From Penicillus capitatus (lineage: Eukaryota > Plantae > Chlorophyta), in NCBI GenBank assembly GCA_965649825.1, contig OZ287711.1, positions 416,781-480,780 of the forward strand: a stretch of 64,000 bases of DNA, given 5' to 3'. Position numbers and translations under genes: made by a program. Each line of letters opens with the position of its first letter. Positions within the stretch are counted from its first letter, which is position 1. This document shows, one piece after another, positions 14,355 through 52,337 of the stretch. The notes beneath the pieces are model-generated. The model was not told where the DNA came from. It searched no databases and saw only the letters and a list, made by a program, of their open reading frames with translations.

Positions 14355-14543
14355 GGCGTCGCCAGTCGGACGAATGGACTCCGTCTGGCGGAATGGACTG
14401 GCGCAGCACGGCAGGAAGCGCCTCGCAGGAGGATGGTCTAAATGGGCGATGGCGCTAGATGACGCCATTCGCAGCGCTGCGCCGACAGTTCGTCGCGGTC
14501 GCGTCATCGCTCGTCGCGTTTCCCGTCAGACGCACGCAGAACA

Positions 14544-20275: not shown

Positions 20276-20419
20276 CGAGCGGACGATCTCGTGATGGCCT
20301 CATTAGACTCCCTAAATTGCCCGTCCGTTCGCCCGTCTAATGAGCCCATCCTGATGAATGGAATGCATGCGAATTGAAAACGCACTGCGTTCTCTGGCGG
20401 CGTTCAGAAAGTCGACGTC

Positions 20420-25523: not shown

Positions 25524-25643
25524 CCAATAATAGGTCTGAGGTTTGCCAATAATAGGTCGGAGGTTTGCCAATAATAGGTCTGAGGTTTTCCAATAATAGG
25601 TCGGAGGTTTTCCAATAATAGGTCGGAGGTTTTCCAATAATAG
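25524..25643. repeat. 22-bp minisatellite, 5.5 copies: CCAATAATAGGTC(T/G)GAGGTTT(G/T)
   Basis: Units start at 25524, 25546, 25568, 25590, 25612 and 25634 (partial), with no spacers. Confidence 0.97.
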
Positions 25644-28965: not shown

Positions 28966-30758
28966 TTACACAGAGTTGAGAGTCCGTCCACGCGTGTTAA
29001 CATTGCGAAGACACGGAAAGGCATCAAACAATGATGCGTGTGTTTTGGCATCTATGGTGTGATAAAGAGGGGGATCTACTGTCCGACAAAGTGGGAGATC
29101 TATTGTCCTGAGCTTGGGCAAACCCCCTTGTGGCACTCCAGATATACTGTCGATCAACCGCTCGGGGAATGGAATCTCCAGTACTCTCAAATTCGAGAGA
29201 AGACTCAGCTGTTTGCAGACGAGGCTATGGTCCATTTGTGTCTTGCGACCACCGAGGCGCAGCTTTGTCAGACCAGTCAACGCCACGAATGCGCTGAGAA
29301 ACGCGCGATCCAGACAGGCGTTCCACAATGTCAGTGCCTTTAGCTTCCTGAGTTTCCTGAAGAAATGGAATGGTGTCACGCCAGTCGTGTGGAACAAATG
29401 CATCTCTTTGGCGCTATGGATGCATAAGTACTCGAGACGTGTCAGGTCTACCAGCTCCATGAGCAGGTCTGTTGGAAAACTTTGTTGCGTTTTAAGTCCA
29501 AGATCGACGATTCCTTTTGGAAAGCGTAGGGGATGGTTTCCAGGTGTGGCATCCAGAGACAGCTGTGTGAGCTGAGTGAAAATGCTGAGGCGTTGCGTGA
29601 TCTGGGGTGAGACGACCGTCGGAATACTGTCCAGGAAAACGAGTGATTTCAGTCCGGTCAGAAACTCCATGCACTCTACAAAAGGCAGTATATCTTCACC
29701 TTCGGGTGCGTGCAGCTCCAGCTTGGTCAAGTCCTGCATCTGCCGTATTCCTTGGAAAAAGCTGTTCTCTTGTTGAGTGATGTTGTAAAGCGAAAGCTCT
29801 GACAGACGACGGAACGCTCTCCAAGGGTACTTTCTCTTTGGCGACAGCCGTCTGAATATCTGGCGAATATCCAGTGACTGCAGCGAGTGGGCATACGGTA
29901 AGATCATCTACAGAAGGCGCTCAGGGAAAAGATAGACGCGTGTGAGGATTGACAGACCCTGAGGTGGAAATTAGTCGGCGGTGGGTACTTGTAAGGAAAG
30001 TGACCGACAGTCAGGCGCTCGAGTCCTGTCAATGAAGGCAGAAGAAGCTCACGGCTACTGTTGAATAGCACCTGAATGTCCACCACCAGCTCCTTCAGTC
30101 CTTGCAGCTCGGCGACGGGTTCCAGATCTCTTTGGATGACGCAGTCGACAGAGAGATCGAGAGACAGCAGGTTCTCCAAACGACGCAGGACGTGGACGAC
30201 ATCGTGCAACGTGTCCTCACGACCCACTCGTATGCATAGCATTCGGAGACGTTGCATCGACGGAAGACATCCCACCAGTGGAGTCACGTCCATTGCAGCC
30301 TTGGATAGAGACAGATCTAGATGCGTGAGGTCTCTGAGTCGAGTCAGATGCGGAATCAGATCTGTCTCTACATCATTCACGTCGTCGAGCCAATGGTTCA
30401 TTGTCAGTGAGGAGGTCTTGGGGAACAGGTCAGCGACTTTGCCCAGCTCGTCTGGCCGCACTCTGCGTATCTTCACCGGCACTTTCCCACAAGCTTCGCG
30501 CCATCGTCGACAGACAAGGCGACATTCATGCAGTCCGTCTTCCGCGACGAACGAGAGAACTCTCTGTAGCAGATCTTCCTGTTTGAGAAGGACGCATAAC
30601 GCATGCGCTGCCTCGGTAACTGTGTCTGCATGCGACTCGACAATTTCTTCCCTGACGTCCGGCTCTGCGACCGTGTGCAACTCCGCCTGCTCAGTACTGG
30701 CGGCGCTCTGCGAAGTCTTCTTCTTCGAGTACCGGTGCTTCTTCAAAAGTGACAACAT
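28966..30758 (-). CDS. F-box-LRR protein (intron 29957-29908)
   Basis: LLKQEDLLQRVLSFVAEDGLHECRLVCRRWREACGKVPV, LRRs, 50-bp family intron, FPCLR C-terminus. Confidence 0.9.
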
Positions 30759-31950
30759 AAAGTTCTGTCGACAAATGTAGAGCGAAGGAACGAGCCGATT
30801 CAAGTTCAAAGCGATAGCATTTATCCGTTAACGCTGCAACCCCATCTTCATGTCATTGCTCTCTTGATTCAATCTACTTGAAGGCATGGCGGTGGTCATC
30901 ACGCAGCAATCGCTTTTGCTCTTCTGCGTTGTGATGGATTTCAAAGGTCGGCCAAGTCCTGGGGATCGATAGTGTCGACACTTTCGCCCTCGTAAACGAA
31001 CTGTCGAGTTGAAAGACAATACTTATGACTGTAGGGCCTGGCGCCTCATGTTTGGTGACTCTTCGCTTACGACAGTGTGTGTGCTTTCTCTCGGTGATGA
31101 CTGTCGGCGCTGTCGACGAAAAGAAAAACAAAAAGACGGTCCGGAAACAGCGCCAGAACGGGTCCTGGCCGTTCGCATTGGATCAGCAGTCTTGTTTGAA
31201 CCAGGGATTGGAGTGACATTAAGCAAGGGGAACTTCGTGATTCCGACAATTGCATGCGGCAAGCGACTGCTGTCATTGCATTAGGTGGCATTCCTTCCGT
31301 GCGCCAGCCGTGAGAGCTTGACGTGGACGTAAACCGCTGAGCGTTTTCGAGAAGCTCGTCGCGTCGCGTCAGTCCGGCGAATACTGTGCTTTCATCTCAT
31401 GATAGTGGCGCACTAGGCAGCACACATGCGTCTCTCTTCGTCAAGCCGACCGATTTCGCGACAGGATAATGACACCTAAAACACCACAAGACGTTACTCT
31501 TAAACAATTCTGCGAGCGTCGTGTCAGCAGACATTTACGGCCCAAGACCTGTCACATCAGTTTCTTCGTTCGTGTAGCCTTCGGCGTGTGCTGTGGGTAC
31601 AGAAACACTTCCTAAGTCAAGTAATGGATTCGCTCGAGTAAGACAGTCAGTTGGTTTGGCGTTTCGACGTTTCGAAGCGAACAACACGGACGGCGCTTTT
31701 TCTCAAAAATGATGGGATTCGATCCATGCACAAACGCACCCATTCCACATTAAACAGTTGCCACGTGTCTAGATTCAGGATCATGTACGCCGACTTTCTC
31801 GACAGCGTCGCAGTTTCAGATATAAAGTCGCGTCAGACAGCGCACCGAACGGTTTCCGACTGTCGCTGTTCGGCGTTTTGCGTTTTTCTTTTCTGCTTTT
31901 TTGCGTCGAGTACATACGGTCGCCTCGTTGACACCTTCACGTTCGCGTCA

Positions 31951-33024
31951 ATGAATTTTCAGACGGACCCTCAAGATCGCGCTGTGCTTCTCGTCGTCGG
32001 AAGAACGCGAATTGGGAAGAGCGAATTCATTTCCACAGCTAACCGCATCTTCCACGGCAGCAGACTTCCGGACATCGTATCTGATGGTTTGCTTTCACAT
32101 ACCAAGAAGACGCAGGGATACCCGATGCGTCTTGGTGACAAAGACGTAAGCATGGTGGACACTGTCGGCATCGATGACATCGGCGAGACGGACATTCCCG
32201 ACAAGACGTTGCTCCAGTTTCTTGCGCACAGGAGAAAGGCAGATTTCTATCCGCCGTTGGTCATGATTCAGGCGCTGTCTCGGCTGGAGATAGAGCTCTT
32301 GACAAAGATGGCCTCCTTCTTTACAGACATCGTCGTCGCTCTGCGAATGGATAACAGATCCACTTTCGATATCAATCGAAAGCACATCTGTGAAGCGTGC
32401 CAGATACGACCGATCGTCATCTTGCCGTTACAAACGTTCATGTCTTCTGGCCTCGGCAAGAAGGCAACGCAGTGTGATTACCAAGATGGTGTCTCGACGA
32501 TACTGAGCTTCTACAGAACCTTAACGCCTTCCAAGAAGTTGCCACGTAGTCCTCTATTCGTTGGATCGTTAGAGAAAACGCTGAGCCTGCCAGAAACAAA
32601 AAGCGAAGTCGTTGAAGAAGAAAGCCGCGAAACACGGCGCATAACGAGGGGATCTGTTCTCGTTCGCGTGACCCAAGTCGGCGGCAAGGACGTGTTGTAC
32701 GAAGAAATCGGCAGGATGCCCGTAGCTGTACTCGTGCTAGCATTGCCTTCAATGACTAACGCTGTTGCATTGTTTGGAGCAATACTTGGAAGAAAAGAGA
32801 AGATTAGATACGTCGAAAAACAAAGAGAAGTGGACGAGCTGTTCAAGATTGTAACGAAGATCCGCAGAACGTATGAGAGAGAAGTTCAGGCAGTGTGGAA
32901 AATACTTGCCGGCGATAGCAGGGGTCTCGAGGGATATGAATACGGACCGTGGGAGATTGTCGACGATGAGGTGGTGGCACGTAGCGAAACGAAGGTGTCC
33001 TCAGTTGTGGTCAGAGGAGAGTAG
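31951..33024 (+). CDS. TRAFAC-class GTPase (AIG1/GIMAP/Toc34/septin-like) with C-terminal hydrophobic segment, 357 aa, intronless
   Basis: G1 GRTRIGKS, G2 Thr in SHTKKT, G3 DTVG. Hydrophobic MPVAVLVLALPSMTNAVALFGAILG. Confidence 0.85.
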   Translation: MNFQTDPQDRAVLLVVGRTRIGKSEFISTANRIFHGSRLPDIVSDGLLSHTKKTQGYPMRLGDKDVSMVDTVGIDDIGETDIPDKTLLQFLAHRRKADFYPPLVMIQALSRLEIELLTKMASFFTDIVVALRMDNRSTFDINRKHICEACQIRPIVILPLQTFMSSGLGKKATQCDYQDGVSTILSFYRTLTPSKKLPRSPLFVGSLEKTLSLPETKSEVVEEESRETRRITRGSVLVRVTQVGGKDVLYEEIGRMPVAVLVLALPSMTNAVALFGAILGRKEKIRYVEKQREVDELFKIVTKIRRTYEREVQAVWKILAGDSRGLEGYEYGPWEIVDDEVVARSETKVSSVVVRGE

Positions 33025-34560
33025 CCAGAGGATGCGCCAAAGAAAGATGTGTCGATTGAACATCTCTATTAACGACTGCCGTCAGGGTAATAAACATTTT
33101 AGATGTACGACGCTCGTACACCACGCGCCGATGCAGAGCGATGTCTTGTGCATTCCTTCATGTCTAGCACGAAGAGATTCTGTGACTGCCTCCATTCTGA
33201 TCACAATCTATAGCTTTCCGAGAGTTGTTCTCTTGTCTTCCGTCGCAGCTGCTGAGTACAGTTCAGTTGTATTGAGCTATGATTGATCTCACCATTGCTG
33301 GACAGAATACTCGTCTTTCTAGTTACCGTAAACATCAACCCAATGCGCTGTTTTCACTGTCGGCCATTCTGTTTTGTTAGTTGATTGTGGCTGGTCGATG
33401 TCTCACGGGTACAAACTCCCAGCTAGGTGCTACGGCCCTTACGCGGAGGGTTTTAGCAGTTATTTCTTCCCTCTGTGTCTAGAATAGAGATCGGATCAGG
33501 AATCCGCACGGTACAGAAAGACAGATCGAAACAGTACTGTACGCGGAGCTCACTCAACACACGGAAGCGAAGCGATTGTCGTGATGGTCGTCTTATTAAT
33601 GCTGTTATCGTCCAACGATGAAGACCTCTCTGTGATGTCTCTGTTTCCAATCGATGACCACGGCAGCACGATGGTGGACGAGATTTATTGGACAGACCTC
33701 TTTCTTAGGTTGTTCAGTGGTACACCTGTGTGAAACCAACTGTAAAAGATTCTGAAGTTTCGTGCAGTAGTCTGCTGAAAAACGTCGTGTCACGACTCTG
33801 ACGAGAATGCCTGTTGTTAAGAAGCCACATACGGATCCAATCAGTGTCCAACAGAGCAGCGTAAGCCAAAACGTCACGACTGTCGCGTCGCCGTCACACA
33901 TCAAAACCCAGTTCGTTTGCGAAACACGCCGCCGACCTCTGTTCGGAGTGCACGAGAATGTTATAAGTTTCCGCGACTTCTTCTCGTCGCATTTGCGAAC
34001 TGAACGATGTCGTCAGTGTGATCCGAGTTGGATGGAACAAACGATAACTGACTTTAAGCTTCGTGGCTTTGTCGGCAAACGGGAACGGGTAATGAATCGA
34101 CGGTATCGGCCATCAGCCGAATGTGTGACATCGCCTTGGAGCACAACACGAGACAGCTGACCTCCAACGACTCGCGGCATAGACGCAGGTGGAGTCGGCT
34201 CAGATTCCTCCGTCGTGTCGCTGAAATCTCCAGGCGCGGCAGACGTGTTTGGGGAGATGGTGTCGATACTCGTGCTCTGACACCCGCCTGGAGGCGAGCA
34301 CCGTGTCTGCTGTCTGACTTTGCGTCGACTACCGCATTCTACGAAATCGACGACGCATCCGCTCGTGGATCTGCTTTCGCCGTCACGACATTCAAAGAAA
34401 AACCCACAGCACTGAGTACTCAGGAACGTGACTGACAGACGGGTCATTGCAGGAATCACAAATGAGCTTCGTTCGATGAGTTCTTCGGTACGATAAGGAA
34501 GAGCACAGTCAGGACGCGAGGGTCTAGCGATTAGAAACAACACATAGCATACTGAGCAGC

Positions 34561-36344
34561 TCATACGAGACGGTAGATCTGTCCGGCGTTGTCGCCGAGG
34601 TTGCGTTTAAAGGTCGTGGCATTCAAGAAGTGAATACTGCGGAGGCATGGAAACGTTCGAAACAGTACGGATCTCGGCAATGACTTCTCTGTACAAATCA
34701 GTCGCAGTCCAGCGAAACAGAACTTCACCGAATCCCCGTCTGCGATGAAGAGGATGCGTTGAAGACGTGGCACACGACACGCCGCTGGTCGGATCAAGAA
34801 TCCAATCACTGGCCAGTAGCTAGGCATCCCGAGCACTCTCAGATTGCACAGGAGGCTCAGCTGAGCGTAGAAACGATGAACGTCGAAGCGAGTGACCTTC
34901 GGGACGAAACTCAATTCCGTCAGCTCCGGAAGCGTCCCGAGTACGCTGAGAAAATCCGACTCGACGTCGGTCTTCCACAGTTCCAGCGTCTTGAGCTTCT
35001 TGAGCGGCTGCAAAGCACTGGACAGCAGCAGGAGACTGCTGTCTCGATTGCTGACTCGCAGCGTCACCAGGTTGGGCATGCGGGCCAAGGCGCGCGACAG
35101 ATGGAGTTGCGAGTCCCTGAAGATGGTGATCTCAAGGTCGACCATCTCAGGCAGATGACGCAGACGCGTTCCGCACAGGGACATTGCGCAGATCGATCCC
35201 GTCGCGGCGAGACGCGTCAGTTGCGTCATGGCCGCCAGTGAGTCTGCCATGCGTCGTCTGGAGACGATGTCTCTGCACGGATCGATCGAGAGCGATTTGA
35301 GTCCAGTGAGCGCGAGCACGGGATCCACGGAGACTTGACCATCCGGATGCATTCCGCCGGCGATCGTCACTTCTGTCAGGCGACTCAGCTCCACGAGGGC
35401 GGCGGGGAAGTCCGCGTCCCTCAGGGCGAAGCAACTCGTGACGAGCTTCTCCAATCTCGAAAAAGACGATAGCAACAGCCATCCCTGGAATGAACGTCTG
35501 GCAGTGCACGCCTCGATGTCCAGTGACCGCAGCGACGCGGCATAGGGAAGGAACGACTAGAACAGACACAGCGCGTTTCAGAATGCTCGTGCGGCGCCTA
35601 TCGCACCTGCAAGTGCACTGCTGTCCAGTCCTGTGGTCCCAGATGAGGAGCGTCGCTGAATCTGAGTCCCGTGAGTCGGGTCAGCGACTGGAAGACGAGC
35701 CGCCCGTCACTCCTGACCAGACTCCTAGCGTTGCCGCTCAAATGCAGCAGTCTCTGGAGCTCTGTGATCGGTTCGGGAAAGGCATGGCTGTTGCACGGCG
35801 CGTGGACATCCAGGTACGTGAGGTGCACCAGGCGTCTCAAGGTGTCCATCCAGACGGCGTGGGTGGTCGCGTCATCCGAGTGGAAAGAGAGCGATCGGAG
35901 GCGATCCATCGACAGCAGAATCGGACGCAGTCCCTCGGCGACCTGATGTCCAGGTCGAAACGGCACCTGCATTGTGTGGAGCTTCCTGATTTCTGACAGC
36001 CAGGGCAGGGCATCGACACCCAGTCCTTTCTTTCGGCTCCTGTCGACGAGGCACAGAGATGCCGCCTCCGGAAACTTCTCTGTCACCTGTCTCACCATTT
36101 CGGTAACGCTGATAGAGGAGACGTCTGCCCGAATTCTGACGGGCAGCCTCCGGCAAGCTTCACGCCAATGTCGACAGACGAGGCGACACTCGTGAAGGCC
36201 GTCGTCCACGACGTACGCAAGCACTTTGAGCAGCAAATACTCGTGTTCGAGAAGTGCACCCAGGCTGCCAACCACCGTCGAGGGCTTGGATACGGAGCAA
36301 GTATCCACAACGTCTTGCCGTCTCGCCAGCCGTGACAAGGACAT
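34561..36344 (-). CDS. F-box-LRR protein (intron 35606-35557)
   Basis: LLEHEYLLLKVLAYVVDDGLHECRLVCRHWREACRRLPV, LRRs, 50-bp family intron, FPCLR motif. Confidence 0.9.
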
Positions 36345-37448
36345 TGTTAGCTCTGAAAAACGAACGTTGCGACGGTCGCGACGAAAGCAGCAACAGAAAC
36401 CTTATGACTTGCTGCAACCGACTGTGATGTTAACACGCGACTCCAATTCGCAGGTTGCCGATAGCTTCGTTTCTCTGAAAGTGACGTTTGTATCATTCAT
36501 CTGGAAGCGACGATGGGTGCGCAGTCCCTCTCCAATGACCTTTCAACCACGTATAGCTACAGAGGGACGTCCAGATCGCCGCGCCCACATCGCGCGAACA
36601 AACGCATAAAAGAAAACGGAACAGATTCTGCTCGTGGAATCGACAACAGGTTCATTGTGAGGGTGACGGAGTCACCCTCGTGATGTCCCGGGTCACATCA
36701 TGGCAGTGACTCCTCCGCAGTGAACCCGTGTGTCCTCTCGCGGAGTCGATCTCACGACAATTGTCGAGGTCCCAAACGCCTTGAAAAGACACGTTCAACC
36801 AGTCGACCGACCTGAAAGTAAGACCGTGGTTGTCACCAAAAACCTGTCACGTCATTCAATTCGAGACGAGACGCGATCCCGCAGGACGGCAAAGAGTACA
36901 TCCGTCTCCTTCACGCTAAGGAAATCACCAGAGATAAAAAGACAGGCGAAACCTGCCGCGTCTGCTTGCCATGTAATGAACGTCCTCTCGTACCCGCATT
37001 CCGATCTCAGGACGCAAGAGAGATGCCCTTGAGGCAACTACCGCCGTCTGCATCTCTTCTCCAACGCTTGCGCCACCCGTCCTGTCAAGGCGCGTTGACC
37101 ATTGCCGTCTTTTGACAAAGGTTGCCCGACTACGGCCAGAGTGTGCGTATTTCTTCGGTCAGCGAGTGAATGCGCCATTCGGAGGATGCAGTCGCAGCGA
37201 TTTCGCCGAGAAGGCGTGCTGTTCGTCGACATCGTCGGCGCGCAGAAATCAATACGTTCGAACGGTCTCAGGATCGGCGGCATTCTTAAACGTCGTCTAA
37301 GATGCATGAAAAGCTCCAGTGGTGAACGCGTCGACCCAAGCAAATAGAATAAAAATAATGCAACAATAAAATCAAGGAACTTCTGGCAGAAGCACTTATG
37401 CGGTGTGCAAAGAAAAGAGGCGTTGTCATTCAGACGATGGCGTGCTGC

Positions 37449-38251
37449 TTAAGGGGCAGCTGAGTACGAAAGGACGTCCGCATTAAAAACAAGCGCCGAG
37501 AGCCGAGCAAGCGTCGGGCGACCCACCATCCTCGCCGATAATCTAATAACACCAACGACACCTCTAGATAAAAGTCGACGTGCGAGACTTGGATAGCTTA
37601 CGTCTGCGACATCTTGAAGTCTTCTGTCGACTGCTTCATCATGCGGAATGAGGCCGCTGCCGCACTCTTTGCATGGACAAGCTTTAAAGGGGATGGTATT
37701 CGTTTTACCGATAATGCTGCGAGCGACGGTTCCACATTCGCTGCTTCCGCCCAGAAGGCCGACGATGCAGAGAGGAGTGTCCCATTCAGCGTTTCGAAGC
37801 TCTCTTGCTGCACTATTGTTCAACAGGACCTGCGATGCATGCGATGTTTGCCGAGGTAACGACGATGTTATTGCTCACTCTCGTCGGCACATTCAAGCAC
37901 TGTTCGGCGGCATCATGCAATGCCGTGTTGCCGCTGTCGTCCGTAACGTCAACGTCACAGCCGTTTAAATTCACCAACCAATGGATGCACAAACTGCACG
38001 TTGACGAAACGGAGCGGTGCAGAAGCGTTTTTCCATTACTGTCACAGGTGCATGTGCAAAGCGACGGATCTGGGAATTCAGACGCGAGGGTGTTCGAGGC
38101 GCCGCTGTTGACATAGCCACAGACTATCGGGTCGCATGGAGCAGTGTTGACTAGAGCACACCATCACCACGCAGCATAGGCAGCAACCGAACGCACCAAC
38201 GCTGGAAGCGGCAGCGAGACAAAACAGAACGGCAAGGACAGACGGAGACAT
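37449..38251 (-). CDS. Putative secreted Cys-rich ankyrin-repeat protein (exons 38251-38197, 38150-37879, 37829-; 3' end uncertain)
   Basis: Signal-peptide-like MSPSVLAVLFCLAAASSV. Ankyrin motifs DSNGKTLLH, GCDVDVTDDSGNTALHDAA and LLNNSAARELRNAEWDTPL. GT-AG introns of 46 and 49 bp keep the frame. Confidence 0.75.
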
Positions 38252-39546
38252 CTTCGACGCGCAACTCAGGAAGAATGTCGCTCGTTGCCTTTCCTGAACG
38301 CGATTCCAAATGGCGAATGGATTTTCGATCGAGGCCATCGCTTTTATGGGGACCAGGGCATAGCTTATATGGCTCATGAAAGCTGTGACACGTGTCACAG
38401 CCCCGCGGCATCCATGCGTCGATGCTTTACTAAGCGCTCAAGCGAAACTGTACTTCGCAACGAGGTAGCGTATCGTCTGAGAGTCGTCGACCTCTTGGTG
38501 TCTATCCAGATCGAATCCGATTCTCTAACCGAACACGCGTCATGTTGACATAGACAGGACGCGTCCTTTGTTTTCACGCAGAGTTCACGTTCTATGGCCG
38601 AATGCACCTTCGACATCGTTTTCTCCGGACAGGTAGCTTCAAGCGTCTGAGGTTCTGCGCTCCTTGCTAGACAGGTGTCCTGGAGCGTTTGCGTTTTTGC
38701 GTTCCACGAACTTCGTCGTTTTCTTCGGTCTTCATGAAAGAGACGGGCGAACTTTGGTATATTGTCTTCTATCGTCGCGCATTCCGCGCGTCACTCGACT
38801 TAGCGCTTCTCCATAGATCGCCTAGAAATACGATTTCGTTGCTTCTATATGCTTAACGCATCGTTTGCCGTAGATTGGGTCGGCAGCGTTTTACCGTCTA
38901 CGAGGCGAACTGGCGATAGCACTGCTAACGAAGTGCAACGGCTCGTGGGTTTCCCTGCATTTCTCATTGAACTGCGCGAGGCAACGTCGCTAACGGCAAG
39001 AAAGAATCTGTCGTCGTCGAAAGTTCCTGTGCTCAGCCAGAAGACATTCGTTGTCTAAACACTCGGTTTATAGATGCGCCGAGAGACAGACGAGGGGAGA
39101 ACTTATATAACCAGCGGGTGACTCTAGGAGTTTCATTCCCGCATGGTTTACGAAAGCATGCCTGGCGTGAGGCGACAGCGACTGCCGTTTTCGCGATGCC
39201 TAAAAACGCGCTTGCGAAAACGTTATATGCGCAGTGCAGCTTTACAGCACGCAATTGTCGACAGATATTCTTTTTCGAAGGAGAGCGGCCGTTCGCTTTA
39301 TATGACAGGACAGAACATACGATGACGCTATTGAGTTGGTTCGATCGATTGCAAAGTATTGACCGATGCGGTTGTTTGCTGCGGATCGACGTATGCATAC
39401 CGGAGTCCTAACCTTGAACCCCATCTCCGCTCCAGTTCGAGAAGAACGCAAAGAGTGCGCAGATGTGAGGGAATCGGGGATTGCGGCTTTAAATCTCATA
39501 GAGGAAGTGTGTGTTTATAAAACAATGATTCTGAAAGACAACGCTT

Positions 39547-41422
39547 TTACCATCGAAGGCAAGGAAAAGCTTTCGTCAATGCCGAGTAAGTATTGTCATC
39601 AACGGAGCCTCGTATACCGCGACCTAATTTTCTGAGCTTGGGCAAACTCCCATGCGGCAGTCCAACTTCACTGTCGACCAGCAACTTGGATGGAAACGGA
39701 ATAATAAGCTCCCTCAGATCTGAGAGCAGGCACAACTGCTGGAGGAAGAGTTTTTGGTCGACTCCCTCTGGCTCGACATCATCAAAGCACAGCTTCGTCA
39801 AGCCGGTCAAAGCCACAAAAGCGTCGAGAAACGGGCGATCCAGACGGACATTCCGCAATGATAGTGTCTTCAACTGCCCAAGTTCGTTGAAGAAATGGAT
39901 TGGTGTCATACCATCCGAATGAAATAAATACATCTCTTCGTAACTATCCAGTTGCAGTGACGTGAGTTTGGTCAAGCCGACCAGCTCCTCGGACAGGCCT
40001 TCCGGAAAAGAGTGTCCTGAGGAAAGATTGAGATCGACGATTCCCTTCGGGAGGCGCAGAGGTCGGTCTCTGCGCACGTAAGGCAAACACAGCCGCGTGA
40101 GCTGCGTCAATACTGAGAGGCGTTCCGTGATCTCCGATGACATATCCGGATTGGCATATTCATAGCCAAGCACAAGGGATCTGAGACGTGTGAGTGAGTG
40201 CATGCTTTCTGAGAAACCTTGCGCGTCTGTTTTGGATGCGAAAACAAAATCCAGACTCGTCAGCTGGCCCATCTGCTGCAGTGCCATGAAGAAGCTCGCA
40301 TCTCGATCGTAGCAACTGTAAATTTTAAGGCTCGACAGATGCAAGAACGACCTCCACGGGGACGGCCCTGGCAGAAGCCACTCTTCCAACGTCGCACGAA
40401 TACTAAGCGATTGCAGATTCTCAGCATAAGTCAGGATACTCTATCACAACACAGGTTAATTGACAGACAATTGAATGCAGCAGTTGGTAAACCTGCAGAT
40501 CTCGAACGTACGGCTTTGTGTCTTTGAACTCCCAGTCGTCATAGACACTGAGGCTGGTTAGTCCAGTCAACATGGGGAAGACAAGCTCGTTCCAATCGTT
40601 GGCCAGTAACTCAATAGCTGTATGCAGCTCACGGAGTCCCGTGACACAGCTGCTGGGAACCAAATCGTCTACGGAAGCACATTCATGACTGAGACGTAAC
40701 GATGTCAACTTCGTCAGATAACGCAGGTCATGAATGAAGTATTGCAATGTGTCTTCGTGACAGATGCATAACTCAAGAAATTCCAGATTCTGCATGGACG
40801 ACAAGCATGCGATCAGGTTTCGCATATCAATGGAATAGCCGGAGAAAAGTAGAGAAAGATCGTATAAATATTCGAATCGCTTCAACTGTGGGACCACGTG
40901 TGTTTCTATGACGTTCTCATTGTTAACCCAGCCTGACATGTACAGTGTTTGGGCCTTTGGGAACTTCTCTGCTGCCTCCTGCATGTTATGCAAAGATATT
41001 TTCTCTAACCGAACAGGCAGTTTCCCACAGGCGTCGCGCCACCGGCGACAGACGAGACGGCATTCGTGAAGGCCATCCTCAAGGACGTGCGAAAGCACTT
41101 TAAGCAAGAAGTGTTCCTGCTCGAGAAAGGCACTGAGCGAATCGCCCGCGCAAGGACCACTGGTCTCCGTATCCGTCGACGCATCGGAACTGCGACGCAG
41201 CACACAACTGTGAGCATTGGGCAACTGACTACCTTGGGGGCATACCTCATCTTGCAACGAACGGCGTTTCGCTGAAGAATGCGGAAACACGACGGTCTCT
41301 GGTCGGGCGATTTTCGTTTTAACGTTCTCGTCGACGTTGTCTAGCTTGAGGCGACGTACGTCAAATGTTCGCATTCGATGTGACATGACTTCTCGTGTTG
41401 TCCACGCGACATCAGATTTCAC
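39547..41422 (-). CDS. F-box-LRR protein (intron 40492-40441; start uncertain)
   Basis: FLEQEHFLLKVLSHVLEDGLHECRLVCRRWRDACGKLPV, 52-bp family intron. Most similar by eye to the 28966 copy (RLPKGIVDL, TPxHFF, PxGxLPKLR). Confidence 0.9.
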
Positions 41423-42743
41423 AATGGCGTCGTCTTCTGAGCACGGGTCCCAGATTCATCCTGCCGAGCGTCGACCTCTTTGAACTCCGCAAATACTCCT
41501 ATCTTTCTGCCACCATAAGCAGATGCCGTAGATAGATATCTTCGTTGGCTGCATACTTTGTACAGGAAAAACAGCAGTACGAGCGAAGCCCATTGAAGAG
41601 TAAGTTCAGGGATGGTCTCTTCATTCTTCAGACACCACACCCTGTGTATGCATCTTGCTGTCGGTATTCTATCGTCAGCAGAATCTGTTGAAAATGACTC
41701 AAATGCATGAACATGGGAACATACGCATTTAGCGATTTAACTTGCGCATGAAGACTCCATTCGCCGATACACCGATTATTCTCATGCACAAAGAGCCGTT
41801 GATCCGACAGAGTTAAGTGTACAGCTTCTGTGACAGATGGCATCGCCGACGGTTTTGTTGACAGTCGAACTTGTTTCGCTCTTTTGCGATGTCGTCATCT
41901 TTGATAGGGGCATTGCGAACAGCGTCGTCAATAGCAGACTGCAACTCAACATAGTGGATGCGAAGTCTATGGAGATTCGTCAAGATGTGATGGATGGAAG
42001 TTTAAGCATTCCATGAGGCAAGCGTACGATGAATGGCATTCCTTGTCGCGTTAGACGAATGACTTCAATGCGGCCGCAACGTCCACATCGCTGACGTGAC
42101 AGGTGTCATGAGCATCACTGTTTATCTCTTTTATTGACATGTGAAAGATTCTCTACTCGATCGTGTCTGTTTGCTACAACTGGATATTGTTCGTTTGCAT
42201 AGATGGCTTTGGATACGTTCGTTGCAAACACCTCTCTCCATTCGGACAGATCTGAGAATAGGGCTCATCGGAAAGCGGCAAGCAGCCTCTCTTCGTTCAT
42301 CCATAGGAATTGAAGAGGTCACGTTAAATGTGCGGATGCTTGACTAAAAATCTGCAAGCGGTTATTACCCGAACCACAATCCCGCGTCTGGAGTTTCACA
42401 CACCACAATCGGGAACGCGACGCGAGGTCGGTATTTAGAAAGCAAGCGCCGCAGAGTCGGTCGTTCTGCTCTGCTGCGATACGCGAGTTGCGTGAGCATT
42501 AGAGAAGGACGAATCGACGCATCCTTCGTGAGATTACAGATAGCTGACACGTGTTCCGATCTCAGACGAATTTGATTTGACCTTCTTTGAAACCTCGTAT
42601 CCTCCACCCACACAGTCTTGTCAAACAGCGCAGCGAACGCTTCACGGATTGCCTTTTCTCGGTGTTTCGGAGTTCTTCTCGTCGATTCTCTGCTTTGTCG
42701 AACAGAAAACGTCGACGACGTACGTCGTGGGAATTCGCACTCA

Positions 42744-43829
42744 ATGTCGTCTTTGCCGGACTCCAAGGCACCTCCCATGTTTCTCGTCGCCGGGAGAACG
42801 CGCATCGGAAAAGGCGAGTTCATTTCCACGACGAACCGCGTCCTTGGAGGGAGTCCTCTTTCGGGTATCGTTTCTGATAGCATGGTTTCGCATACGAAAG
42901 AGACACAGGGATATTCCATGCGTCTTGGTAACCGCAAGGTGGTGATGGTGGACACCGTCGGCTTCGACGACAGCAGCGGAACGAACATACCAGAAGAAAC
43001 GCTGTTCCGTTTCCTCGAGATAAGCAGAAAGGCCGATCTCTATCCGCCGCTGGTCATATTGCAGACGCTGTCTGCGCTGGAGAAAGACCTATTGCAGAAA
43101 ATGAGTGCCGTTTTCCCGACGATCGTGGTCGCTTTCCGTTCCGAATTCAAGTCCAGGCTCGACGAGGCCCGACTCGATATTGAGAGAGCGTGCGAGAAGA
43201 AACCGCTCGAGATCTTTCATTTACAAAGCTTTGTCTCCGAGGACCTTGACGGCGGGAGATCTCGTTAACTATACGATGACGCCGTCTCAGACATCGTCCG
43301 TTTCTACGAAACCTTGACGCCTTCCAGAGAGGAGCTGGATTTTTTGAGCCCCTTGTTTGCTGGAGAGTACCAGTGGACGCCATGTCCTAGAGAAATCAAA
43401 ATTGAAATGATCGAGGTCAGCCGCATCGAGACAAGGACCGAAACAAGGACAGTTCAAGTTCCGGAGACTGAAGTCAACGATGACGAAGCTAAGTTGCACG
43501 GAGCGATCGGCGGCACGGTGGCCGGCGCTGGTGCCCTCACGGCGTTGGCAGTTCCTCCAGTGGGACTCGCCGTTGTAACGTATGGCGCCTTGCATGCCGT
43601 CTTTGGGGCGATATTTGGAAGAAAAGAAGAGATCAGATATGTCGACGTGCAAAGAGAATTCGACGTAAACTTTACGGTTAGAGAAAAGATCCGCAGAACA
43701 TATGAGAGAGAAGTTCAGGAAGCGTGGAAAGTACTTGCCGGCGAGATCAAGGTTTTCAAGGGATATGAATACGGACCGTGGGAGATTGTTGACGATGAGG
43801 TGGTGGAACGCTCTGTTTCCAGAGACTAA
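42744..43829 (+). pseudogene. Second AIG1/septin-like GTPase with one in-frame TAA (43266-43268)
   Basis: GRTRIGKG, SHTKET, DTVG. The frame continues past the TAA as LYDDAVSDIVRFYETLTPS, matching paralog DYQDGVSTILSFYRTLTPS, through to the shared C-terminus. Confidence 0.85.
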
Positions 43830-45248
43830 TCTGTCTTGTATATGGTCGACCCCGCGGCTGATGATCGATGTCGTTGTCTGTTTTGCTTCTTCTGATGATG
43901 CGTCGAAGAAAGGGCTTTACCATTTCTGTGATTGGAGCTCGGGCGAACATTTCTTTGTTCGGAATGCGTGTTTTTTCGTCGACAAGAAATCGATGGCCGT
44001 CATGTATGTCTTCCCTAAGTGTTTGTACAAAGCAAGAGGCGTGTCACTAAGGAGAGGAAGACTGTCCAGCTGTTCACAATTCTCAGTGCAGCGAATGCTT
44101 TGCATTGGTCTATCTGTTACTGATCTCTTTCTCGACGCAGTCGCATCGTTGCTGATGTAAGCCACGTTCTTGGGGGATAAAGCAAAGAGTTAGAGCGGGC
44201 GTCTGTTCACGCAAGAGACATCTCTTAGAGACACGCGATTACGTACACACAGGCCTCGGAGAAGTCGTCCGATCACACTTGGCGTCGATCGAGAATCCGA
44301 GGTGACAGCCGCGATGTCTGTTGCATGTTGCGAAGCAAACGTGCCTCGAGTCGCAAAAAGGGATGCGAAAGAGCGCGAACTACAAATCCGAGTGATTTGG
44401 CGGAGAGATGCAGAGATTGATGAACATCGCAGGTGTTCTGAACAATGCTTGCTGACATCTTCCACCAAATCTAAAACGCGTTTGCTCGCGCGTCCTGCAT
44501 GTGCGACAGAGCCGCACAGCGAATCATTCAGCTGTGTTCTTTTGCCGTCGCAGTCATCAATGGTAAGCTGTGAATCTAACAAGAGATCAATCAACGTGAG
44601 TCAACGAATGGCTGAACAAACAGTTAGTAAAGGTGGCAGCGGTGAGAGGCTCTAATAGGGACAATATCGTTCCGTATAAGAACACCAATGAAACGTAGCG
44701 TTTGGAGTTTCACTCAACGGCCACGGCACTGAACTCTGTTAACTTGAGATTCATAGGTGAACTCAAAGAAGTTTCCAGTCCCACTGCGCACTCGCGTTTC
44801 GTGGCAGGATTGTGGCATTGATTCCCAAACTGACGTTCCTTCGAGGCATCTCGGCAAACAGATCAGTTGGGGGATTGAGTCCCGGGTCACACTCTCCCGA
44901 ACGTCTCTCTATACATACAGCGTGTTTTCTAGAATCCACATTCACTTCCCAGACAATGCTTGCCAATATGTCGGAGGTGATGCGCTCGACACCGGTCCTG
45001 GGGCAGGAGACCATGCACGTCACTGGCGTAGCCATAGAATCGCCGGGCGATGGCGATTCACTGCGCATTGGTGTGTCGTATGCAGTGCTTGACATCCGAC
45101 GTTTGATGTTTCGATCGAAGCGATAATCGAATCTACACCCGCTGCGGAAACTGCGCATAACTCCAACAAACGCGTCACGTACTAAGGTTGACTCGTCGTC
45201 CGTCTTTGCCTCGTCGAGAGTTCTCTTGTGCTTCTGCAGACTCCAGTC

Positions 45249-48200
45249 ATGTCATCCAGCGAGATACAAGCCGAGCCCAGTATCGGCAGCGCGGATGGCC
45301 ATGAAGACGGTAGCGGTCCGGAAGCGCAGCCAGCAAGACAGAGCGATGACATTTCAGACGAGAAGAAGCTAAGGGCTCTCATGCGACAGAAGGGCGTCGA
45401 CTCCACGACAGCTCTCGTCCGAATATACAATGGTTCGCTGGCGGCCGAAGCAGAAAGACTCCTTCAGCAATGTCTTCGCATCTACATCGAAACGAAAGAG
45501 AAGCACGCTAATGACGACACCGTCATGGAATTCGTGGAGCTCTGCAAGATGAAGCCACGGACGGAAGACGACAAGAAGCTGCTCCGAGAGGTGGTCTCCT
45601 TTCTCACTGATCGAATTCCAGAAAGAGAGTTCGCCGCCAAAAGCGTCGCAGAGGCGTTGTACAGGTCGTTGCTCTGGACACCTCCTGCAGTTCTCCAGGA
45701 AAACTTAACAGGACTCACAGCACTGGCGGATAGGCTTATGGACAGCCTATGTCCGACTCCAAGGCTGACAGAGGAGAACTTCCTTGAACACGAGGCCATA
45801 TTTATGGCACTGCACGAAGTCTTCGTGCTCATGCAGAGGGCAACGAGTAAGAAGGTGACGGTGGAGGAGAAGAAGAGGTTCCAGTCGAGCCTCAGGGCGA
45901 AACGCTCATCGTTGGGAAACTCGTGTGAGTACTATCCCGTCCGGTACTACTTCAGACTCATCGAACAGAGCATTCAGCTTCCGAAGCTTGACGAAGAGCC
46001 TTGTATCACTCAGAAGACCATCCAATGTTTGTACATCATCACCTGCGGATTCCTGTACATCTCTTACGCAAAGAGACAGAGAGTAAAACTGGATATCGAT
46101 CCAGACATGCTGAGAGAGCTACCTGAAAAGTTGAACGAACTAGTTGACGATATCGAGCTTGCCGAACGCCAATGGTATGATCTGCTTCAGGCTCTTTGCG
46201 TAGCAGGCAGGAAGACTATCGAGGATCCCCAGAAGCTTCCGATTTTCGAGGAGAGCTACAAGACCGTGGAAGAATCTGTCTGGAAGATGCGACTCAATGA
46301 AGACGGCAAGGCGTTGCTCTTTGGACTCATGCAGGAGCTCCGTCATCTCGCGTTAGCTCAATGCTCTGCTGAAGTCCGCGCGTCAGGATCATCGAAGCTC
46401 TTTGCTCTGGCGGCTGCCGTTTCGAAAAGCACGTGGGCCAGAGACAAAAACATTGTGGAAGCGCTGCTCTGCTGTCTTCATGCCATTCATTCGAGAGGCA
46501 GCGATGCTGCAGCGGCGTTGAGATCGTCACAACAACTCAAGAATTCCGTCAAGTTGAAGTCAGTCAAGAAAGTTGTGAAACAATGGATGGGCGACAAACT
46601 TGATGAGAAGCTCCGCGAACCTGTGCATGCGTCTTCGGAACCTACCGGAGATCTCTTCACTGCGATCGGTCGAGAGTTCAACCACATACCATTGAAGGAA
46701 GCGCAAGACAACGTCGAACTGTTGAAGAGTCGGTACCGAAGCGACGCGTTCGCCACAGTAAGGCTTTACTTTCATCATGTTTTTCTGTTCACCGAGAGCC
46801 TGTGCATTGAAGGTGCCTTCTCTGTTCGACAGTACGTCACGTCTGCATGTGAAGGAAATGGAGCATCATATTGTTTTCTACCAGATCGTGGAGGACAAGA
46901 AGGAATCATCGAAACAGTCAGATTCGCATCAGAGCAGAGACGACCAGTCCACTGGACGGAGAGTTGCGAAGCCCATCGCGTTGAAGGACCTCTTCAAGAA
47001 GAGAGTCGTGCAGGAGAATCGTCCTGCTCAGGATATCCGAACGATTTTGTTTCATGGGATGCCGGGATCAGGGAAGACATGCATCAGCAAGCTCATCGGG
47101 TATATGTGGGCAACGGATCAGATGTTCGGAGAATTCAAAGCCGTGTACGTCCTACCGGCTAGAGAGCTCAACAATAAGGAAGTCATCGAAGACACGTACG
47201 AAGAGTTTCTGGCGTTCATTCTCAGACAGTGTTTCCCAAGAGGACGTGCGTCCGATAAAGGGCTGTGCGCACAAGTGGATGATCACCTGGATCTCCAGAC
47301 GACGCTGCTCGTCATCGATGGCTGGGATGAAGTAGACGAGAAAGCCGAAGCCATTCTGAATGAAGCAAAGCGCAGACATTGCAGAGTCCTCTGGCTCATG
47401 CTTCCGTACGATCTCCATTCAATGCGTGAACTCACCGATCTCAAAGTGGAGTGCCTGGGATTCAGCGATGAACAAGTCGACAGGTATGTGAAGAAAGAGA
47501 TGACTACCAGACACGAGAGAACGGAAGCAGAGGCTCAAAGTCTGATGGATGATCTGAGAGGAACGGATTCGCTGTGGGAAGTAGCGCATATCCCAGAGAT
47601 GACCTACATCCTGTGCTTCCTCTGGGTAGAGGGTGTGTGCCTCAGTCAGCGGAGTCCGGCTGCAATGTACTGCGATATGGCGAACCACATCTGGAATCGC
47701 TTCGTACAGAAAATGGGATTCCGTACTGGGAAACCCAAGCGTAAAGAGGTCTTCGAGGCGCTTGAGGTCATTGCGTTCGATGCGCTGCGCAAAGACCACA
47801 TCCTTATTGGAATGAGCTTCGTCAACGAACGAGTCTTCCATCTGGGAGTCAAAGAGGTGTTAATCCATAGTGGATTCCTACTGTTCTATAGGGTAGGCCT
47901 CGACTACAAATTTCCACATCTGACTTTCCAGGAGTACTTTGCCGAGAGGTGGGTGGCGAAAAACTTAAAGAATCTCGATTCACCAAACGGCAAGACAGCC
48001 GTCAACTGTTTGCGAGAAGAGAAGTACCTGAACAGATATAAGAGAACGTTGCAGTTCCTGGCACAGCACATGGCAGAAGAAGAACAAGGTGACCTCCCCG
48101 AGCTGCTGTCATTCTTTGACGACGGACCGATCGAGATCATCGGTCTGCAGCATTTTCTCCTGAAGCTGCACATCATCGAAGCTTGGCTGACTGGGCTGGA

Positions 48201-50229
48201 AAATGCCGAATCAAAGAAAGACTGCTGCGAGCGCGATGATGATGTCGCTTTGCTCATCAAGGCTGCCGTTTCACTGATCAGAGACACAGATGTGAAGCAT
48301 CGAGAGTTTCGCGAGATCCTGGGACACATGCTTCAGCAATGTCCCTTACTGTTCTCCGCTGTGCCCGAGATCCTCGATCAGCTGACAGAAACGACAACGG
48401 TCAAGAAAGCACTGAGATACGATGTATTCGGAGACGTCGTCATCATTACCAAGAGATCTGACAAACACTTGACGATTTTGATGAAACTGGCGCAGCACAA
48501 CATTCAGAGTTCGGATCTCGAGACGCGTGATGTCGGGATACAGATGATGCGAAAGCTGCTGGACTTTGTGCCCGATCTCTTCCAGAGATTCACGCCGTTG
48601 TTTACCGAGATGTTCAAGGACGATCGGCCCGTCGTTCAGGATACGGCACTGCAAGCCGTGATCAGTCTCCTGACAGACAAGCGCGAACTGTTTCCTGTCG
48701 TGCTGCCGATGATCCAGGAAGCGATCGGCAGTCTAAAGAGCTCTGCACGACGGGCGGCGCTGGAAGTGATCGGCAGTCTGTCATCGGTGACAGATGACGA
48801 GTTCGAGTCTATCTTGCAGATGATCATCGGCGGCGGCAGCGATGAAGACGAAGAAGTCTGTCGAACGGCAGTGCAGGTTATGAGGCACTTCGTATCCGAG
48901 AAGACATCCCAAGCGCCCGATTTCATTCCAGTGCTCGAGCGTCTTCTTTCTGGAGAAAATGAAAAGGTTCGACAGGAAACGGTCAAGACGATGGAGTACA
49001 TGGCCAAGAAAGCTCCAGACGTGCAGCAGGGGCTTCTGGATATCATAAACGAGACTTACGAGAACGGAACGGCCGGTGTTCGGCGAGATACGGCAGCAAT
49101 GGCTGGACGTCTGGCTGCTGATTTACCGGAGATTCAGGAGTTCTTGTTGCCGATGATTGAGAAAGTCTGTTACGACAGGTCCGCCGCCGTCCGTTTAGCA
49201 GGAATGGGGACAATTAAGCGTCTGATGGTCAGATCCTCGGAGGAAAGGAACGAAATGTGGCACCATTGGGCGACGGTGGGATTCCTGGATAAAAACAGAT
49301 CCGTTCGCCGAGCGGCCGCTGAAGCCATCAGTTGTCTTGCCTCAGTTCCTCACCTCTGGAAACACAACCTGATGCTGTTGCGAAGAGCCCGCTTTTTTGA
49401 CGACGTCCACGTGCGTCTGTGGACGGTCGATGCACTGGGTCGACTCTCTTCTGCTGCACCTCACATTTCAAAAGACGTTCTTGCGCTGTTAGAAAAGACG
49501 TGCTCGGACTGGAGCGTCCACGTGCGGCAGTGGTCGATGGAAGCTGTCGGACATCTGGCCTCCGCTGCGCCAGAGCTCGCGTCTGATCTGCTGTCGTTGG
49601 TAAACATGGGGTGTATGGATGAAGACGAGCACGTGCGTTTGTGGGCCTTGAAGGCAGTCAGCAGATTGGCAACAGCTGCACCAGAGTTTGCAGACGATCT
49701 TCTGCCGCTACTCAGGAATGTCTATCAAAGCGACGACACTCATATGCTGAACAGGGCAGCCGAGGCGCTGAGAGACTTCACGACGGCGGCTCCGCATCTA
49801 TCTGCCCAAATCCCGACAAGAGTTGAGAGCGAAGAGGACAGTGACGCACCGTCATCGACTGGGCTGGCACCCGTTTCGCAAGGAGCGATTATCGATGACT
49901 TCGAAGACGTACTGAAAAAGGCCATCGAAACGAAGAACACGGAAACTCGCGAGCGAGCCGCATTTGGACTTTTGCATGATGCCGTCACCGTGGAGAATAC
50001 ACCACAGGAAGGAATCGTCAGAGTTCTCCTTCATACGACTGCCATCAGAGAAGTGGGCGAGTATCCGTCCAAGGAGATAGAGAAATTCAGGTCTGAGATC
50101 AGAGAAACGATCGAGAGTTCTTGCGGCGGTTTGATGGAAGTGTTAGACAAGGTGGCGATAAAGCCAGATAGGACGGCGTCGACAGACAAAGTCAAGTGCC
50201 AACCAACACACACGCTGCATTCTCGATGA
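45249..50229 (+). CDS. NACHT (STAND) NTPase with N-terminal helical domain and C-terminal HEAT repeats, NLR-like, about 1641 aa (exons 45249-46757, 46813-50229)
   Basis: Walker A GMPGSGKT, Walker B LLVIDGWDE, winged-helix FPHLTFQEYFA, HEAT repeats (VRxxAxxxL). 55-bp GTAAGG..GAAG intron conserved in the paralog. Confidence 0.93.
49399..49842 (+). repeat. Four tandem 111-bp (37-aa) HEAT repeats inside the NACHT gene
   Basis: His codons at 49408, 49519, 49630 and 49741 are exactly 111 bp apart. Units: HVRLWTVDALGRLSSAAP / HVRQWSMEAVGHLASAAP / HVRLWALKAVSRLATAAP / HMLNRAAEALRDFTTAAP. Confidence 0.92.
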
Positions 50230-51840: not shown

Positions 51841-52337
51841 TTGTGTCAGTTGTAATCATTCATTTTCACACGCTTCCCTGTGCTGGACTTCCCGGAGTGA
51901 ATCCACATATACGATCAAACTACGAGAGCCGCATTGGAGTTCCCTGAGGTGATTCGATATCGCTCTGTTCACCGGATAAGGCCCCTTCCAGAAGGGTGCA
52001 AACTTTTCGTCTAAACGGCCCATTCGAACGTGATCTCTAAGCCAGACGCTCTCGCCAGCTTGAAAGAGTAAACAAAAAGGAGGAGATCGACCCTCGGAGG
52101 TCTTCTGCTGCCGGGCGCAAGTTTTCTGCCTCGCTCGAGAGCGCGCTTGTCTGACCTCTGAGATTACCTCGGCCTCCAAGCGACCCATTGCCCAGAGCTT
52201 CGCTGGCGGTGATCCCGTGACATCATTGGCAGTTTCATTAATCACGTCTGTCGCTTTCTTCAGGAGTTTCATCCAGGTGGGCCTTCGGGCCCCTTCATGC
52301 ATCATTCGACGTAATCGCCCGATCAAATTCTGATTAC

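Follow-up and report, generated by a model that had tools for sequence, protein, structure and literature searches.

A small family of GIMAP-like P-loop NTPases with a predicted beta-ribbon stalk and a variable, often hydrophobic tip

We analyzed a 64,000-nucleotide stretch of contig OZ287711.1 from the Penicillus capitatus assembly GCA_965649825.1 (positions 416,781 to 480,780 of the forward strand), hereinafter the window; all positions below follow its numbering, and amino acids are numbered separately for each gene copy. The window harbors two paralogous genes, copy 1 and copy 2, each of which encodes a P-loop NTPase domain (G domain) followed by a module that is predicted to form a long beta stalk carrying a hydrophobic tip. 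Judging by sequence comparison, the two genes belong to a tiny, lineage-restricted family of AIG1/GIMAP-like P-loop NTPases, and the architecture of these proteins appears to be undescribed. We tentatively favor the interpretation that the family consists of GIMAP-like NTPases anchored to a membrane or a lipid droplet on a rigid beta stalk; the analysis shows the structure of the genes, the limits of the family, the selection on it and the predicted fold, and from these we infer the insertion into a membrane, the topology, the dependence on GTP and the biological role. The two genes and their parts are the following.

31951-33024, + strand: copy 1, an intact gene of 357 amino acids followed by TAG (open reading frame (ORF) and translation)
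31951-32517, + strand: G domain and linker helix of copy 1, amino acids 1-189 (alignments, Pfam, Foldseek)
32593-32679, + strand: predicted outgoing strand of copy 1, amino acids 215-243 (DSSP on the AlphaFold2 model; predicted local distance difference test score (pLDDT) of the block 84-89, amino acids 211-230)
32716-32790, + strand: tip of copy 1, 25 uncharged residues with a central LPS, amino acids 256-280 (sequence; pLDDT < 50)
32794-32994, + strand: predicted return strand (amino acids 282-310) and three short C-terminal strands (amino acids 312-348) of copy 1 (AlphaFold2, alignment)
42744-43829, + strand: copy 2, with the architecture of copy 1, a single frame throughout and TAA at the end
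43266-43268, + strand: in-frame TAA in copy 2, with Q, R or E in relatives (sequence, alignment)
43365-43475, + strand: predicted outgoing strand of copy 2, model residues 18-54, that is, amino acids 208-244 (AlphaFold2, alignment)
43494-43619, + strand: tip of copy 2, 42 uncharged residues, amino acids 251-292 (sequence; pLDDT < 50)
43626-43823, + strand: predicted amphipathic return strand (model residues 105-140) and C-terminal strands (146-170) of copy 2 (pLDDT 84-97)
32858-32981 (copy 1) and 43687-43810 (copy 2), + strand: gene-conversion tract, 90% nucleotide identity over 124 nucleotides

Both genes are located where the original prediction, made from the sequence alone, had placed them, and the peptides quoted there are present in the ORFs and in tblastn alignments. 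Copy 1 comprises, in this order, the G domain, the beta stalk, the hydrophobic tip and a small C-terminal beta unit; copy 2 shares 49% identity with it over the whole length (tblastn, E = 3e-95). The family profile matches copy 1 with E = 6e-126 and copy 2 in two segments, one per half (E = 2e-77 and 2e-57). Neither tblastn nor a hidden Markov model (HMM) search detected a third family copy in the window, including the region upstream of a duplicated block with an NLR-like gene that is described below. The arrangement is evidently not a chance feature of these two ORFs, given that an uncharged segment occurs at the same position in database relatives. The genes are real and subject to purifying selection, as shown by the ratio of non-synonymous to synonymous substitution rates (dN/dS), which amounts to 0.17-0.36 for the G domain and about 0.13-0.5 for the return strand; within subfamilies, this selection extends to the tip (dN/dS 0.12-0.25 in close pairs).

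Copy 2 is interrupted by an in-frame TAA codon that is absent from the original prediction. At this site, relatives carry CAA/CGA-type codons, and the close relative P0013 has Q. The dN/dS of 0.13-0.29 against the closest intact relative indicates that copy 2 was under selection until recently; the gene is probably a recent pseudogene, with a sequencing error or read-through as the other explanations of the stop codon. We also considered an alternative code in which TAA encodes Gln and rejected it: stop codon reassignment is unlikely because copy 2 itself ends in TAA at the usual end point of the family, where P0006 and P0008 end as well, and it is further opposed by the observation that TAA, TAG and TGA each close ORFs in the window.

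Relatives of the two genes are few. A word-index protein search retrieved 8 proteins, all from ENA metagenome assemblies (P0002-P0009; P0001 denotes the long ORF of copy 1, and L001-L007 are loci of the relatives). A second search of this type, based on a 24-sequence alignment, returned fewer proteins than the first, the only new ones being P0030 and P0053. An exhaustive HMMER search of 1.84 billion representative proteins yielded 44 proteins at E ≤ 1e-3, about 30 of which are true members, many of them fragments. All the relatives come from metagenome or read-archive assemblies, and none were found in IMG/VR, GTDB genomes or JGI metagenomes. The divergent members retain the G domain, the stalk and the C-terminal block (R.T.ER...W..L.G), and vary in the tip. 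In P0030 (run ERR4592243), the most divergent member with a Gly/Ala tip, the G domain and the C-terminal half are encoded in separate ORFs (L004, 47-403 and 411-1232), a configuration that reflects either an intron or another pseudogene.

The G domain of copy 1 contains the P-loop GRTRIGKS, the switch-I Thr51, the DTVG motif at amino acids 70-73 and a degenerate G4 motif (ALRMDN). Among close relatives, the switch-I Thr and the G3 DTVG are invariant, and Arg132 is the sole conserved residue of G4; the GKS form of the G1 motif is found in copy 1 alone, whereas copy 2 and every other member have GKG. The G4 Asp is not conserved, being missing in copy 2 (RSEF), in P0007 and in divergent members. 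Searches with curated profiles place this domain at the edge of known families: the Pfam MMR_HSR1 scores of 21.9-22.5 bits lie right at the 21.9 cutoff, the AIG1 profile (PF04548) reaches at best 13 bits (E = 0.02-0.07, in two of 8 members) against a threshold of 27, and neither the Septin profile (PF00735), for any family member, nor a PDB sequence search with the family proteins produced a match. In the Foldseek search with the full-length model of copy 1, which is moderately confident, GIMAP7 (3zjc, E = 1e-5) and GIMAP2 (2xto) come out on top and together occupy ranks 1-4 and 6-7 (E = 1e-5 to 1e-4, probability 1.0, target-normalized template modeling score (TM-score) 0.40-0.50), followed by translation factors, Rho/Rab proteins and Roco, with septin 12 at rank 29 (E = 9e-3) and no dynamin-family proteins among the top 50 matches. 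In the 1.84 billion protein library, the family profile also reaches fungal-type multi-G-domain proteins (E = 1e-8 to 1e-4), the G domains of which clear the Pfam thresholds for MMR_HSR1, AIG1 and Septin. On the strength of the Pfam, Foldseek and outgroup-profile results, the G domain falls within the AIG1/septin-like assemblage of TRAFAC without qualifying as an AIG1 member by the curated test. Accordingly, the original assignment to AIG1/septin-like GTPases stands with respect to the GIMAP7/GIMAP2 matches and the outgroups that pass Pfam, and falls short in the AIG1 score and the lack of a Septin match.

Beyond the G domain, the two copies were modeled in separate AlphaFold2 runs, one with full-length copy 1 and an 8-sequence alignment, and the other with the C-terminal half of copy 2 (171 residues) and an 11-sequence alignment. 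In copy 1, the linker helix spans amino acids 170-189, and past amino acid 189 only strands are predicted, including the short C-terminal strands 312-318, 324-331 and 335-348; the corresponding C-terminal strands of copy 2 are at model residues 146-153 and 157-170. The C-terminal half is predicted to form a two-stranded hairpin of about 35-36 residues per strand, in which the arm is modeled with confidence and the tip is not. For copy 2, pLDDT is 94-97 near the base of the hairpin and exceeds 90 for 61 of the 171 residues, and the five models are alike; the mean pLDDT of the full-length copy 1 model is 64, and the predicted template modeling score (pTM) of the AlphaFold2 models is 0.47-0.49.

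The sequence of the strands is compatible with this topology. The outgoing strand has Ile/Thr on one face and charges on the other, and the return strand displays a period-2 hydrophobic pattern (V, F, Y, I, W) that is conserved across the family and makes it amphipathic over about 30 residues; both strands carry dense charge along their full length. The best conserved block of the family, RRTYEREVQ.VWK.LAG...GYEYGPWE, lies at 32794-32994 of copy 1. In a scan for cross-strand charge and hydrophobic complementarity, the AlphaFold2 register (i+j = 159) ranked first by a slight margin, 0.062 vs 0.049 for the next. The alternating-polarity strands around a hydrophobic segment that had been noticed in the sequence thus reappear as long paired strands in both runs, and the postulated long beta-hairpin with a hydrophobic tip is what AlphaFold2 predicts, confidently for the arm and with low confidence for the tip.

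The C-terminal module has no match in Pfam, NCBIfam, PADLOC or PDB sequence searches, and the Foldseek search with its model produced nothing significant in PDB or BFVD. In PDB, the lysenin pore ranks first (E = 0.014, probability 0.15, TM-score about 0.1), and the list consists mostly of beta pore-formers in the pore state, namely, lysenin, perforin, the membrane attack complex, aerolysin and gasdermin D (probability ≤ 0.15, TM-score ≤ 0.18), because long hairpins are all they share with the module. Neither an ordinary helical tail anchor of the GIMAP or Toc34 type nor a match to a characterized family emerged from the AlphaFold2 models and the sequence and fold searches, and the models lack the helical C-terminal extension that packs back on the G domain in GIMAPs. 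As no characterized family matches either the whole protein or the C-terminal module, the architecture that the first reading of the sequence could not recognize remains without a match.

The tip is the most variable part of these proteins. As originally noted, it differs in both length and sequence between the two copies (25 vs 42 amino acids). The copy 2 tip has the layout 20 + PP + 20, with 21% Gly and 24% Ala; in the model, pLDDT is below 50 for residues 58-103, the second half of which is predicted to be helical. An uncharged, Gly/Ala-rich stretch of 42-58 amino acids occupies the tip position in six of the 8 relatives P0002-P0009, the exceptions being P0008, with a charged tip, and P0009, which is truncated. 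A central Pro-Pro or Pro-Gly is usual, and the short forms have about 20 residues on either side of it. Among the other members, P0010 has a charged tip like that of P0008, P0030 has a Gly/Ala tip, P0042 has none, and P0014, P0021, P0022, P0026, P0034 and P0037 have a short Trp/Gly-rich loop, which in divergent members is flanked by GGH[YFW]E and WV.D.KEE. Comparison of subfamilies shows lower conservation in the tip than in any other region, with 19-37% amino acid identity and third-codon positions near random. On a translocon scale, the best 19-residue windows of the tips sum to -0.4 to +4.3 kcal/mol. The glycine zipper proposed originally does not hold up: the Gly + Ala fraction of the tips is high (0.28-0.65), and in the 13 tips compared, the counts of the [GAS]xxxGxxx[GAS] periodicity do not exceed the means of composition-matched shuffles, with at least 261 of 500 shuffles reaching the observed count in every tip.

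The similarity between the copies at the DNA level is concentrated in the return region, and the description of the return strand as nearly identical in DNA was an overstatement: identity is 82% over 211 nucleotides, and the 90% value applies to the 124-nucleotide tract alone. Synonymous divergence (dS) is 0.08 over codons 331-352 vs about 1 over most of the remaining gene, so the likeness in this region reflects local gene conversion and is not a general property of the family. The differences within the tract are mostly non-synonymous (DSRGLEG vs EIKVFKG), and the P0004/P0007 pair shows similarly low dS at the same place.

These observations can be combined in the following scheme, which we consider the best available explanation, if a provisional one. 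Past the G domain and a single linker helix, the chain would run out and back as a highly charged two-stranded beta ribbon, roughly 100-120 Å long if extended, with the base closed by the three short strands of the conserved C-terminus. The tip, typically 20 + Pro-Pro + 20, would be buried in a membrane or in the monolayer of a lipid droplet as a helical or re-entrant hairpin, so that the G domain would share the cytosolic side with both ribbon strands and be kept at a fixed distance of about 100 Å from the surface. Nucleotide-dependent dimerization of the G domains, as in GIMAP2/GIMAP7, might then assemble a scaffold on this surface or tether one to it. The expansion of these genes into arrays beside NACHT-HEAT and F-box-LRR genes, the gene conversion, the pseudogenes and the divergence of the tips from one subfamily to another suggest a role in immunity or conflict.

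Several considerations weigh against this scheme. Binding and hydrolysis of GTP by family members are uncertain because most have a GKG P-loop and there is no conserved G4 aspartate. The models are built on only 8-11 sequences, pLDDT of the tip is below 50 in both, and a free two-stranded ribbon would need some partner to shield its hydrophobic face. The hydrophobicity of the tip appears marginal for a transmembrane helix, and the 25-residue tip of copy 1 is too short for a helical hairpin that spans a bilayer. Membrane burial cannot be a universal function of the tip, to judge from the members in which it is charged (P0008, P0010), short and Trp/Gly-rich, or missing (P0042). Finally, clustering of the genes in a eukaryote may reflect only block duplication.

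Some of these points could also fit a protein that does not contact membranes, in which the tip is a variable recognition loop or a buried oligomerization core on a rigid stalk, and the NTPase is a soluble switch or scaffold. The charged, short or absent tips, the low conservation of the tip between subfamilies and its marginal hydrophobicity all speak for such an arrangement. However, a monomer would have difficulty staying soluble with the 42-58 uncharged residues that six of the 8 relatives carry, the conserved Pro-Pro in the middle, flanked in either direction by about 20 residues, resembles a membrane hairpin, and purifying selection maintains the hydrophobic composition of the tip within subfamilies. 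On balance, we regard a tip without a membrane role as unlikely.

The possibility of a membrane-attacking effector, in which NLR- or GTP-triggered assembly of hairpins leads to tip-driven insertion, permeabilization, and death of the cell or killing of a pathogen, appears improbable. It draws on the amphipathic return strand, on the dominance of pore-state beta pore-formers in the C-terminal Foldseek list, on the Gly/Ala-rich hydrophobic tip, which in general terms is reminiscent of membrane-active peptides, and on the co-oriented NLR-like gene 1.4-4.2 kb downstream at several loci. However, the pore-former matches are insignificant, with long hairpins as the only likeness; both strands are densely charged, unlike membrane-spanning hairpins; the tips of beta pore-formers are short and polar or form a small rivet, not a hydrophobic block of 40-60 residues; and tblastn and family HMM searches revealed no motif shared by the GTPase and the N-terminal region of the NLR-like protein. 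A specific version of this idea, in which the family is the executioner arm of an NLR-plus-effector pair, such that activation of the NACHT-HEAT protein would cause oligomerization of the GTPase and the tips on 10-nm stalks would disrupt the membrane, is quite improbable; if true, the executioner would belong to a new class of immune GTPases that act on membranes and have no relationship to gasdermins, MLKL or known pore-formers. Very unlikely, too, is that the hairpin is an artefact of shallow alignments (8-11 sequences, pTM below 0.5, and a register favored only marginally by the complementarity scan), with a compact or partly disordered beta domain and an ordinary internal transmembrane helix in place of the tip, given that two runs with different queries gave the same topology with high pLDDT over a third of the copy 2 half, that beta-branched residues abound in the arms, with period-2 patterns that the whole family conserves, and that a single membrane-spanning helix would leave the membrane between the two conserved flanks.

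Under the membrane-anchored NTPase interpretation, the family is a variant of the membrane-associated AIG1-like GTPases, with GIMAP2 as the nearest precedent. GIMAP2 is directed to lipid droplets by the double hydrophobic domain at its C-terminus, transmembrane segments at the C-terminus anchor GIMAP1, 3 and 5, the G domains of GIMAPs dimerize on GTP, and a helical C-terminal extension folds back on the G domain (PMC8201404). The family resembles these proteins in the fold of the G domain, the TRAFAC-type G1/G3 motifs, the conserved switch-I Thr, and the location of hydrophobic segments C-terminal to the G domain, to which the presumed membrane association can be added. According to one published account (PMC7053062), the GIMAP/AIG1 (IAN) genes tend to lineage-specific expansion, loss and genomic clustering, and the present family is likewise expanded and clustered. 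Unlike GIMAPs, its members score at best 13 bits with the AIG1 profile, the cutoff of which is 27, and have mostly a GKG P-loop and a degenerate G4; a beta ribbon of about 35 + 35 residues replaces the helical C-terminal extension, and the hydrophobic segment is internal, at the tip of the ribbon, not C-terminal.

Toc34 and Toc159 also combine an AIG1-type G domain with a membrane-anchoring C-terminal region (PMC12845241), as the family is proposed to do. However, the C-terminal module of the family has no sequence or Foldseek similarity to any PDB entry and is only about 160 residues long, with a hydrophobic, non-amphipathic tip. The membrane domain of Toc159 is beta-rich. In proteins of the mitofusin/atlastin type, the chain leaves the G domain through an outgoing arm, enters the membrane as a hydrophobic hairpin and comes back through a second arm, and tethering occurs through G-domain dimerization; the logic of this topology is the same, as an analogy of mechanism only, given that their arms are bundles of helices and their G domain is of the dynamin type. 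Beta pore-formers, such as lysenin, aerolysin, MACPF/perforin and gasdermin, share with the family very long paired strands, one of them amphipathic, and differ in that no match is significant, the strands of the family are heavily charged, its tip is a long hydrophobic block, and the assembly domains of the pore-formers are absent. The proline knot of oleosins and class I lipid-droplet proteins consists of a pair of hydrophobic arms, each about 20 residues long, that flank central prolines, and its two ends emerge on the same side; the tips of the family have arms of similar length around central prolines and differ in being Gly/Ala-rich, the likeness being one of general description, not of sequence comparison.

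The membrane-anchored immune-type GTPases of the GIMAP, IRG, GBP and Toc groups reach membranes by helices. If the proposed anchoring is correct, a GIMAP-like domain on a rigid beta ribbon of about 100 Å with an anchor at the tip would represent a new structural solution and a natural molecular ruler with which the effect of membrane distance on GTPase scaffolds could be addressed. The clustering with NACHT-HEAT and F-box-LRR genes, gene conversion and pseudogenes make this region a candidate immunity locus of a protist, in a little-known area.

The paralogs also share an upstream block, which in the window is located as follows.

31762-31843, + strand: upstream block of copy 1, with CACGTG at 31762-31767, the 19-mer at 31825-31843 and then a pyrimidine-rich tract (9-paralog alignment)
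42548-42631, + strand: upstream block of copy 2, with CACGTG at 42548-42553 and the 19-mer at 42613-42631 (9-paralog alignment)

The elements of the block follow in the order CACGTG, CTCGTATC, AAGTCGCGTCAGACAGCGC and the pyrimidine-rich tract. The block is present in all nine paralogs (in L001-L007, about 100-200 nucleotides before each gene), with CACGTG in most of them, and the search with the 19-mer gave 3 matches vs 0.17 expected. It is probably a shared promoter or 5' untranslated region, and points to common regulation of the paralogs. A signal peptide on P0001 was considered and rejected: its hydrophobic N-terminus is the translated conserved pyrimidine-rich 5' region, the frames of which differ across the nine loci, and the hydrophobic N-terminus of P0019 would likewise be a false signal peptide.

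Apart from the two GTPase genes, the window contains P450, F-box-LRR and NACHT-HEAT genes, a Ty3/gypsy element and a segmental duplication; scans for tRNAs and Rfam families in the window gave no matches. A co-oriented neighbor of the two genes is the following.

45228-50229, + strand: NLR-like gene, on the same strand as both copies (Pfam NACHT 4.6e-13, HEAT 2.5e-19)

This gene consists of an N-terminal ORF (45228-47162, 644 amino acids, no Pfam match) that overlaps a 1150-amino-acid ORF with NACHT and HEAT (46777-50229) in a different frame, and an arrangement of this kind is also present at 60864-64000. The split or overlap recurs in L001, L002, L006 and L007, and L005 encodes a single 1645-amino-acid product; the junction likely contains a short intron or a frameshift. 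In general, the NLR-like genes encode an N-terminal region of roughly 500-650 amino acids without annotation, followed by NACHT and HEAT. Pairing of a family member with an NLR-like gene is also found in L001, L002, L005, L006 and L007; in the window and at four other sites, the NLR-like gene lies 1.4-4.2 kb downstream on the same strand, and at a locus from a second sample, NLR parts are upstream of the family gene instead. One 237-kb contig carries at least 6 family copies within about 105 kb, interleaved with F-box-LRR and NLR-like genes. We found no motif of the HET-S/NWD2 type shared by the GTPase and the NLR-like protein, either with tblastn at E up to 10 or with the family HMM against six-frame ORFs. 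The NLR-like gene is treated as context, and as no more than a possible part of the same system.

The segmental duplication (43852-48384 and 57757-64000, 79-84% identity) carries the NLR-like gene and begins 23 nucleotides past the stop codon of copy 2. The second duplicated block has no GTPase gene upstream and is preceded by a retroelement instead; between the two blocks are Ty3/gypsy-type remains on the minus strand (51856-56336), with ORFs for RNase H and integrase (52668-53951) and for gag-aspartyl protease (55401-56336). Five F-box + LRR genes are interleaved with the GTPase genes, two on the plus strand (9757-11594 and 22250-24166) and three on the minus strand (28966-30809, 34561-36344 and 39547-41422). 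Each is represented by two adjacent or overlapping ORFs in different frames, and probably contains one short intron.

A 66-nucleotide stretch at 7429-7494 matches 41006-41071 in inverted orientation with 85% identity, and a tandem repeat at 25507-25644 comprises 5.5 copies of a 22-nucleotide unit with 95% matches. A 12-kb block at about 10000-22000 has a GC content of 57-68%, vs 46-54% elsewhere in the window; it contains a P450 fragment (12621-13910, minus strand) and an ORF with TPR (18298-20103, minus strand), and its other long ORFs have no Pfam match. Outside the window, L007, on the contig that encodes P0003, P0005, P0007 and P0008, includes a triosephosphate isomerase gene (1020-1796, minus strand), the product of which has an N-terminal extension of about 50 amino acids and chloroplast-type enzymes as the nearest PDB entries (4mkn, 9qm7, 4ohq), the top one algal, which is a weak hint that the host bears plastids. 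The same contig encodes a dynein heavy chain, which implies flagella.

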